A DNA stretch of 64,000 nt from Vitrella brassicaformis CCMP3155. Lineage: Eukaryota; Protista; Chromerida. The notes under the pieces are model-generated. The model was not told where the DNA came from. It was given only the letters and a program-made list of their open reading frames with translations, and searched no databases. The position numbers and the translations under genes are program-made. Position 1 is the first letter of the stretch, and each line of letters opens with the position of its first letter. The stretch covers positions 124,001-188,000 of the forward strand of contig CDMY01000738.1 of the NCBI GenBank assembly GCA_001179505.1, in the 5' to 3' direction. Shown in pieces: positions 60,782 to 61,744 of the stretch.

Positions 60782-61414
60782 CTACCAGTAACCGCCGTAG
60801 CCACCGCCGTAGCCACGGCCATACCCACGGCCGTAGCCACCGCCACCATACTTCTTGTTCTTGTAGCCATACCACTTCTGCTTGAGCTTGTTCTTGTAGT
60901 ACTTGAGCTTGTCCCAGAAGTCCGGGCCCAGCCTCCGCTCTGTGGGACTCGATGACTCCTCCACAGCCTCCAGGCCACTGGGCTCATCTTCATCTTCATC
61001 TGCACACACACCACACACACATACAGTACGTGGCCAAAATAATCTATGACGTGTGTGGTTGCGGGGGATGTCTGTCTGCACACCCACCTGTCGGTGCCGC
61101 CGTCGGCTCATCAGCCGCGACCTCATCGTCTGCTGCCGCTGGCTCCGTCACAAGAGCATCAGACACACCACCTACTTACAAGCACACAGACAGGTACACA
61201 CGAAAGGCGTACCTGTGGCTGCGAGGCATCTATGTCACTTCGTGTGTGCGTAAGTACCATCGGATGTCACTTCGTCGGTGTCATCAGCTTCCCCGCCTCG
61301 CAAACGCCGGGCCGCCGCAGACGGAGCATCGGCATTTGCAGCCCGCCGCTTCTGATCATCAGCGCAGACCAGTGCGATGCCGAGCAGGCACACCAGCAGG
61401 GAAAGGAGCTTCAT
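60782..61414 (-). CDS. Secreted prepro-peptide (3 exons, ~152 aa): signal peptide, acidic propiece, RRL sites, cationic Lys/Tyr/Gly-rich C-terminal peptide
   Basis: MKLLSLLVCLLGIALVCA-DDQKRRAANADAPSAAARRLRGGEADDTDEVTSD/GGVSDALVTEPAAADDEVAADEPTAAPT/DEDEDEPSGLEAVEESSSPTERRL-GPDFWDKLKYYKNKLKQKWYGYKNKKYGGGGYGRGYGRGYGGGYGGYW*; both introns are phase 1 GT-AG. Confidence 0.88.
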
Positions 61415-61744
61415 CGGTCGTGGAGCGGACGGACGACGGGTGGAAACGCAGACGAGCAGCGGGCAGGTGAAGAGACGACAACAACAACAACAACAACAAG
61501 GGGCTGGCTGAAGAGAATAATGAGGAGAGAGAGACTCGGAGTCAAAAGCGATGAGAGTGGAGGGAGTCGAGGGATGCTGCAGATGAGAGGACAGAAAGGG
61601 GAGAGGAGGAGAGAGGATCTCTCTCTGTCGTCGCACGGCTAACGCAGAGAGAGGAGGAGAGCGCGGGAACTGCAACGGCCGCGAATTATGTAAACGCTCT
61701 CATGTGGGATTGCACGAAAACTTTCGAGGATGTCTGTTCATATC

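Follow-up and report, generated by a model that had tools for sequence, protein, structure and literature searches.

In the frog dermaseptin superfamily, a conserved prepro cassette precedes one variable C-terminal cationic peptide per precursor (PMC3742671). In the precursor of the diatom silaffin Sil1p, the signal peptide is followed by an RXL motif, then by an acidic N-domain and by basic repeats rich in Lys whose terminal RRIL or RRNL is trimmed off; a general role as an endopeptidase signal has been proposed for RXL, found in other processed diatom wall proteins too (PMC4557024). The NLP-29 cluster and the caenacins of Caenorhabditis elegans are small, secreted, Gly/Tyr-rich antimicrobial peptides (AMPs) encoded by clustered, recently duplicated, and rapidly diversifying genes (PMC2453101). 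In Toxoplasma, the protease ASP5 has a strict need for R-R-L at positions P3-P1, cuts after the Leu, and tolerates variation at P1' (PMC4764566). ASP5 also cuts at sites near C-termini, and its Toxoplasma substrates are dense-granule cargo (PMC4764566). Here we describe a three-exon gene of the chromerid Vitrella brassicaformis CCMP3155 that invites comparison with each of these systems. The gene lies on the minus strand of a 64,000-nucleotide (nt) stretch of contig CDMY01000738.1 (C738), positions 124001-188000, which we refer to as the window. We propose that its product is a processed, secreted cationic peptide, most likely serving in defence; the proposal draws on analogy with described precursors, and we hold it with about even confidence.

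The coding sequence runs from an ATG at 61414-61412 to a TAG stop at 60784-60782 and totals 459 nt, which translate into 152 amino acids (aa). Both introns are canonical GT-AG introns, and at both junctions a codon is split after its first base. The model agrees letter for letter with the database protein CEM31907.1 (UniProt A0A0G4GNP5; P0001 in our set) of V. brassicaformis CCMP3155, a record titled 'unnamed protein product', and a word search with exon 3 returned this 152-aa protein at 100% identity over exon 3. Genome searches (72.7-Mb assembly, 1064 contigs) and protein searches with this gene were performed exon by exon or with database protein records. The gene stands beyond chance because the same plan is intact in the 8 close and 4 distant copies of the family described below, coding insertions and deletions are all in frame, and transcripts of paralogs share both junctions. 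With these results, we conclude that the gene at 60782-61414 is confirmed as real and that the coordinates and sequence statements of an earlier note on this DNA hold.

The product begins with MK, a 14-residue hydrophobic core, and V-C-A followed by DD, a pattern read from the sequence as a signal peptide, and the AlphaFold2 model places a helix at residues 2-26 over it. What remains after removal of the signal peptide is a proprotein of 134 aa. RRL occurs twice in the product, at residues 36-38 and 102-104. The first occurrence is part of RRLR (residues 36-39), which matches RxLR-like and TEXEL-like (RRLxx) patterns alike, within an ARRLRGG block that is invariant in 9/9 aligned family proteins from both subfamilies and in 8/8 close gene models. 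The second occurrence, in the context ERRL, ends an 86-aa propiece with a net charge of -18. The 48 aa that follow carry a net charge of +9, with 9 Lys, 2 Arg, 2 Asp, and 14 aromatic residues (10 Tyr, 3 Trp, 1 Phe) beside 15 Gly, giving a composition of approximately 21% Tyr, 19% Lys, and 31% Gly in which Ser and Thr are absent. The earlier note had described this layout of signal, anionic propiece, basic site, and cationic peptide, and had placed it in a free-living relative of the Apicomplexa. The parts can be read in the product, the computed charges agree, and the organism is Vitrella. Reading the codons returned the same coordinates for the RRL (60937-60929, given in that note as 60929-60937), and a recount of the 48-aa tail reproduced its 9 K, 2 R, 2 D, 10 Y, 3 W, and 15 G and its charge of about +9.

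The gene belongs to a family of 12. Exon 3 matched eight close copies in the genome, exon 1 matched those eight and four distant copies, and a profile of nine family proteins recovered the same 12 loci and none further. The loci are distributed over C738 (this gene), C582, C366, C748 (five genes), C342 (two), and C338 (two). The five genes on contig C748 cluster within about 140 kb, and the C738 copy is a singleton on its contig. All eight close genes (subfamily A) are intact and follow one three-exon plan, with coding insertions and deletions always in frame. The four distant genes (subfamily B, P0006-P0009) form two tandem pairs, at C342:49240-52570 and C338:108162-111496, and retain the signal peptide, ARRLRGG, the acidic region, and a D/E-R-R-(R)-L boundary. 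A weak exon-1 match on C305 (E 0.002) was dropped, as family features are absent there. Across the family, RRL precedes the peptide in 11 of the 12 genes and RR stands at the acidic/basic boundary in all 12. Every member of subfamily A combines a propiece of -14 to -18 with a peptide of +8 to +13.

The part that would be released is variable, ranging from 28 to 62 aa across the family, and is of low complexity and cationic throughout. Among the close genes, one peptide type, that of this gene, is Lys/Tyr-rich with a GGGY-repeat tail, and another is helical and rich in Lys, Trp, and Ile with only GGGGYY. The C366 paralog encodes a 28-aa Lys/Trp peptide without a Gly/Tyr tail. The peptides of subfamily B are unlike that of this gene: they are rich in Ala, Gly, Val, and Lys, helical, and poor in Tyr (for example LGEFLGKVKQFVGSVKKGIANV..., or a peptide starting GEFLGKVKQF), and they are magainin-like with a C-terminal Cys loop, CGGPC(Y) or CGYNQYC. 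In form, these helical peptides and the Lys/Trp peptide of C366 are textbook AMP-like. The Gly/Tyr tail is thus absent from the C366 paralog and from all four subfamily-B genes, and its repeat number varies in the other paralogs. The paralog at C748:31204-31994 (213 aa) contains two tandem units of the form 'LE.VEE.SSPTERRL + cationic peptide' within a single exon. This duplication of spacer, site, and peptide would be the mark of a cleaved polyprotein. The peptide of P0009 starts LLGEFFRK after RRR and resembles human LL-37; a PDB search gave no support for a relationship, and we take the resemblance to be convergence or coincidence.

Transcripts of two paralogs are present in MMETSP, and one of them carries both modelled junctions. 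In this transcript, P0004 (MMETSP Transcript_52073), which documents both junctions, the closest genomic paralog is a different one for each of exons 1, 2, and 3; the transcript may have been assembled chimerically from reads of paralogs or derive from the copy of another strain. A further record, P0010, appears to be one of the distant members, mis-annotated by reading through an intron.

We aligned the gene regions of the eight close paralogs together with 300-nt flanks and calculated the mean pairwise nucleotide identity of each segment. The propiece segment ending in RRL was the most similar of all (95.7%), ahead of the signal peptide (94.4%) and exon 2 (91.8%). Introns were 82-85% identical and the flanks 83%, and the peptide-coding segment was lowest, below the introns, at 79.1% with 35% gaps. 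Constraint on the gene is strongest in the segment that leads up to the presumed cut. Beyond it, the peptide-coding part diverges faster than the introns, yet its frame and positive charge are always kept. The same pattern was observed at the protein level. Over the first 55 aa, identity is 79-92% within subfamilies and 50% between them; for the peptide part the corresponding values are 42-44% and 20%, the latter a level at which the sequences are unalignable. By the Nei-Gojobori method, the proportions of nonsynonymous (pN) and synonymous (pS) differences were 0.059 and 0.123 in the prepro part and 0.158 and 0.249 in the peptide part, and in some pairs with differing peptide types pN exceeded pS (0.33 / 0.22). 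Units of KNK(I/L)K and GGGY have been gained or lost in frame among the paralogs.

Both RRL sites of the product match the TEXEL pattern RRLxx and the P3-P1 rule of ASP5. Substrates of ASP5 and plasmepsin V resemble the Vitrella proteins in being secretory proteins with an RRL, a site that can lie far from the N-terminus (PMC4764566). They differ in the residues downstream of the site, which are A/S-E/D there and G-P, G-K, or G-L in the Vitrella family, and in what is processed: a folded effector destined for export into a host cell there, and a small putative peptide, with no host cell, here. A minus-strand exon open reading frame (ORF) within C688:131100-134591 (positions 1468-2631 of that segment) has plasmepsin V of P. 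vivax as its best PDB match (4zl4, E 4e-39), followed by saccharopepsin (3e-7), and bears DTGS and DSG motifs and a Cys-rich insert. The match and the motifs indicate that an enzyme of the plasmepsin V/ASP5 type is present in Vitrella. A search of the genome for pepsin-family genes found about a dozen further loci. Judged from its sequence, the C688 protease is a candidate for the RRL-cutting enzyme. A plasmepsin V/ASP5-type aspartyl protease would be the likeliest cutter, and cleavage after the Leu would give a peptide starting GPDFW. The alternative would be a dibasic-specific protease acting after RR, which would leave a peptide starting LGPDFW. The kexin/furin P domain (PF01483) was not found in the genome in an exon-by-exon search, a negative that is weak because the search works exon by exon.

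We built an AlphaFold2 model with the nine-sequence family alignment (mean predicted local distance difference test score, pLDDT, of 53). The model contains two helices only, one over the signal peptide and one at residues 106-130 (PDFWDKLKYYKNKLKQKWYGYKNKK, pLDDT 65-78). Disorder is predicted for the propiece and for the Gly/Tyr tail, and the model has no folded effector domain. A helix is therefore a likely, if model-based, feature of the peptide of this copy. The helical hydrophobic moment was significant in several paralogs and in most subfamily-B peptides (p 0.0004-0.05).

Relatives outside Vitrella were not recovered by any of the searches. Pfam assigned no family to any of the exon pieces or of the nine family proteins and gave only chance matches far from significance. 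When P0001 and P0009 were compared with PDB sequences, no match had an E-value under 0.3, and an ESM Atlas look-alike search with the 48-mer gave no usable match. A word search of 5.8 billion clusters returned Vitrella proteins only. In a HMMER profile search of 1.84 billion representative proteins, the family members of Vitrella were likewise the only matches besides P0011 (832 aa, E 8e-6), which was rejected on inspection as a spurious repeat protein. The same profile search detected no relatives in the sister chromerid Chromera, in oomycetes, in Apicomplexa, or in nematodes. A literature search found no paper linking Vitrella with RxLR and, judging by titles or abstracts, none on an antimicrobial peptide family of Vitrella. 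The earlier note had not recognised a described family, and the Pfam, PDB, and profile searches bear this out. Its author had also suggested a homology search against other proteomes; the relatives returned by the profile search were Vitrella members only. We conclude that the family appears to be private to Vitrella and undescribed in the literature searched, and that its architecture is of a known kind.

The frog preprodermaseptins come closest in plan. They too have a signal peptide, an acidic propiece, a basic site, and a single cationic C-terminal peptide that is diverse among paralogs (PMC3742671). The signal peptide has a Cys in both, at the last position in the frog proteins and at the second-to-last position in Vitrella. 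There is no sequence homology between the two, and they differ in the site (KR there, RRL here), in the length of the propiece (24-26 aa there, 86 aa here), and in the setting, which is an animal gland there and an alga here. The Vitrella peptide also lacks a C-terminal Gly amide donor, and activity would be attributed to it by analogy only. The order of parts in Sil1p recurs in the Vitrella precursor, and the two-unit paralog mirrors the repeat plan of Sil1p. Again there is no homology, and the diatom protein is Ser-rich and phosphorylated with several repeats per precursor, whereas the Vitrella peptide is Ser-free, rich in Tyr, Trp, and Gly, and present mostly as one unit per gene. The NLP and caenacin peptides share with the Vitrella family the Gly/Tyr-rich composition and the clustering of diversifying genes (five of 12 on C748); they are not homologous either, and the worm peptides have neither an acidic propiece of such length nor a helical half rich in Lys.

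These observations lead us to the following proposal. The signal peptide would take the precursor into the endoplasmic reticulum, as its sequence suggests, and the anionic propiece (-18) would neutralise the cationic C-terminus (+9) during transit, by analogy with AMP precursors. An endoprotease would then cut at the conserved E-R-R-L and free the Lys/Tyr/Trp/Gly-rich peptide of about 48 aa outside the cell, where it would act on the surfaces or membranes of other microbes in a defensive or allelopathic role. In the 12 genes, a single conserved cassette for export and processing would carry an arsenal of diversifying peptides. Defence is favoured by the conserved cassette, the diversifying cationic peptides of unrelated types, the charge-neutralising propiece, the clustered recent duplicates, and the polyprotein variant, features that characterise gene families of host-defence peptides, with the frog dermaseptins as the model case. 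The idea of a processed peptide gains strength from the conserved prepro part joined to a hypervariable C-terminus, from the paralog with tandem units, from the RRL in 11/12 genes, and from the plasmepsin V/ASP5-like gene. The earlier note had left the choice between a defence and a wall peptide open. The precursor layout on which it relied was recovered and the family pattern fits it, but the Gly/Tyr tail that had suggested a wall role is not family-wide.

Several observations weigh against a processed defence peptide. The P1' residue is Gly at the ERRL site and Arg at the first RRL, and neither is among the residues covered for ASP5 in PMC4764566. One subfamily-B gene has RRGL in place of RRL, and a dibasic site accounts for this better than a strict TEXEL does; as the gene keeps RR and not RRL, dibasic cleavage stays conceivable. 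A transcript of this exact C738 copy was not found in the MMETSP-containing collection, so the splice check suggested with the earlier note succeeded for both junctions by way of a paralog's MMETSP transcript and not through this copy's own. Positive selection was not demonstrated, the pooled dN/dS (ratio of nonsynonymous to synonymous substitution rates) being 0.59 in a peptide part of about 30-48 codons, with values above 1 in some pairs only, and the higher pS of that part may come from gene conversion at the 5' end of the genes or from alignment noise in the repeats. The AlphaFold2 model is weak overall at its mean pLDDT. The helical hydrophobic moment of this member did not rise above that of shuffled sequences on any of three scales (p 0.48 Eisenberg, 0.13 binary, 0.21 Wimley-White). 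For this reason we do not claim amphipathicity for it, and of the amphipathic helix that the earlier note saw in the first half of the peptide, the helix is predicted by AlphaFold2 at residues 106-130 and the amphipathicity did not hold up. Finally, the Tyr/Lys/Gly composition suits adhesive, coacervate, or wall peptides equally well.

That composition is the starting point for a structural role, in which the peptide would be part of the thick sporangial wall or an attachment pad, cross-linked through Tyr (dityrosine or 3,4-dihydroxyphenylalanine) or held in a cation-pi coacervate. Such a role would recall the Tyr-rich peptides of coccidian oocyst walls. The mussel foot proteins mfp-3 and mfp-5 are short (about 45-75 aa), cationic, rich in Tyr, Lys, and Gly, and secreted. 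With 10 Tyr, 9 Lys, and 15 Gly among its 48 residues and a GYG(R/G) tail predicted to be disordered, the Vitrella peptide resembles them in composition, though not by homology, and the way in which KNK(I/L)K and GGGY units come and go in frame is typical of low-complexity structural repeats. The family as a whole fits less well: the C366 peptide is purely of the Lys/Trp kind, Tyr is scarce in the four peptides of subfamily B, and members that have no Tyr/Gly tail speak against an adhesive role common to the family. Vitrella is not known to silicify. The order of parts in the silaffin Sil1p precursor is the same (PMC4557024), but silaffin is phosphorylated on Ser and the 48-aa peptide contains no Ser or Thr. 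Pfam, PDB, and profile searches showed no sequence similarity to wall, adhesive, or silica proteins, and for the Tyr-rich oocyst-wall proteins of coccidia (GAM56/82 type) the profile search of 1.84 billion representatives gave no apicomplexan sequence relatives. We regard a structural role as unlikely, though it is the foremost of the alternatives. Less probable still is an effector of the RxLR or PEXEL type, in which RRLR and the acidic stretch would target a host and the Lys-rich tail would act in a partner (coral) cell, for example by penetrating the cell or targeting its nucleus. Like oomycete RxLR effectors, the protein has a signal peptide, an RRLR within about 60 aa of the N-terminus, and then an acidic run (GGEADDTDEVTSD); both subfamilies keep ARRLRGG without variation, the genome encodes a plasmepsin V-like protease, and UniRef names the protein 'RxLR effector protein'. 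That name is an automatic, motif-level label. The protein lacks the EER that would follow RRLR, no member has a Pfam match to an RXLR family or WY domain, the AlphaFold2 model is without a folded C-terminal effector domain, and the profile search gave no relatives of it in oomycetes or Apicomplexa. The variable part is a low-complexity cationic peptide of 28-62 aa and not a domain. Vitrella is, to our knowledge, free-living and has no demonstrated intracellular stage.

A signalling peptide, of the pheromone or hormone kind, or the basic core cargo of an extrusive or dense-granule-like organelle, packaged with the help of the acidic propiece, strikes us as improbable to the same degree as an effector. 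The prohormone-like layout and the tandem-unit paralog would suit such a peptide, as would the dense-granule location of ASP5 substrates in Toxoplasma (PMC4764566), but signalling peptides are normally conserved, and here the released part changes fastest and is found in one species only. Cleavage itself is read from the sequence, and the protein is predicted by AlphaFold2 to be largely disordered, which would also be compatible with the 134-aa acidic-basic polyampholyte being the working unit, uncut, with RRL kept for another reason. We consider this the most improbable of the alternatives, given the tandem duplication of exactly 'spacer-RRL-peptide', the RR at the boundary in 12/12 genes, and the conservation of the stretch up to and including RRL, the highest in the gene.

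The DNA around the gene also carries conserved elements, which are listed with the parts of the gene in Table 1. The hairpin downstream of the stop codon has the stem sequence GCTCGYGC, a loop of 5-15 nt, and the second arm GCACGAGC, with a C-A mismatch in this copy and in the C582 paralog. Covariation is absent among the eight close paralogs and, as a result, we make no claim about RNA structure; the hairpin may be part of the 3' untranslated region (UTR) or an element of the 3' end. Upstream, a second conserved block (GCGTTTACAT..TTCGCGGCCGTTGC) accompanies the GCGTTAGCCGTGCGACGACAG block, and together they span 61625-61700 on the minus strand, about 215-290 nt before the ATG. The GCGTTAGCCGTGCGACGACAG block may be a promoter or 5' UTR element. 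The whole 300-nt flanks are about 83% identical among paralogs, which indicates that the duplicated unit takes in regulatory DNA. At window positions 61474-61494, within what is presumed to be the 5' UTR, there is a (CAA)7 / (TTG)7 microsatellite, of which C582 has a shorter version and the other paralogs have none. About 18 kb past the end of the window, at C738:206628-207073 on the plus strand, ORF pieces with repeated AARRLDEGDDEDD and DRRAL motifs were observed, possibly belonging to another RRL-processed secreted protein.

Table 1. Coordinates (window positions) of the parts of the gene and of its flanking elements.
Feature	Position	Strand	Remarks
Whole coding span, three exons and two introns	60782..61414	minus	Product of 152 aa
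Exon 1 (157 nt)	61258..61414	minus	Ends after first base of a codon; signal peptide and start of propiece
Predicted signal peptide, residues 1-18	61361..61414	minus	-3/-1 rule
RRLR, residues 36-39, within ARRLRGG	61298..61309	minus	Alignment columns A35-G41
Intron 1, GTACTT..GTAG	61172..61257	minus	GT donor at 61257; junction TSDG|GVSD in MMETSP transcript P0004
Exon 2 (84 nt)	61088..61171	minus	Acidic, Ala-rich propiece
Intron 2, GTGGGT..GCAG	61000..61087	minus	
Exon 3	60782..60999	minus	Ends with TAG stop
First part of exon 3, end of acidic propiece DEDEDEPSGLEAVEESSSPTE and RRL (60929-60937)	60929..60999	minus	
Putative released peptide, residues 105-152 (48 aa)	60785..60928	minus	After ERRL
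Lys/aromatic half, residues 106-130	60851..60925	minus	Predicted helix; AlphaFold2 pLDDT 65-78
Gly/Tyr(/Arg) repeat tail, residues 131-152	60785..60850	minus	Predicted disordered (AlphaFold2)
Hairpin, 8-bp stem, 85-114 nt past stop codon	60670..60697	minus	In 8/8 close paralogs
Upstream block GCGTTAGCCGTGCGACGACAG, about 215-230 nt before ATG	61625..61650	minus	Common to close paralogs

Animals and plants are well known to encode cationic defence peptides in their genes, but such peptides have hardly been described from photosynthetic protists. If this is a defence family, the strategy of a conserved prepro part and a hypervariable peptide would have arisen independently in an alveolate alga. 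The RRL at the exact acidic/basic boundary and the plasmepsin V-like gene make up a testable substrate-enzyme pair in a free-living relative of the Apicomplexa, and the pair bears on the origin of PEXEL/TEXEL export in parasites and on any root shared with RXL processing in diatoms. As a tentative extension, which we consider possible but on the unlikely side, a plasmepsin V/ASP5-type protease of a free-living alga may have the products of these genes among its natural substrates. If this is true, the RRL/RxL 'export element' of host-cell effectors in malaria parasites and Toxoplasma would have begun as an ordinary propeptide-maturation site for secreted defence or wall peptides and would be the same ancient processing signal as the RXL of diatoms and perhaps the RxLR of oomycetes, and Vitrella would have the first ribosomal, gene-encoded AMP arsenal described in a chromerid.

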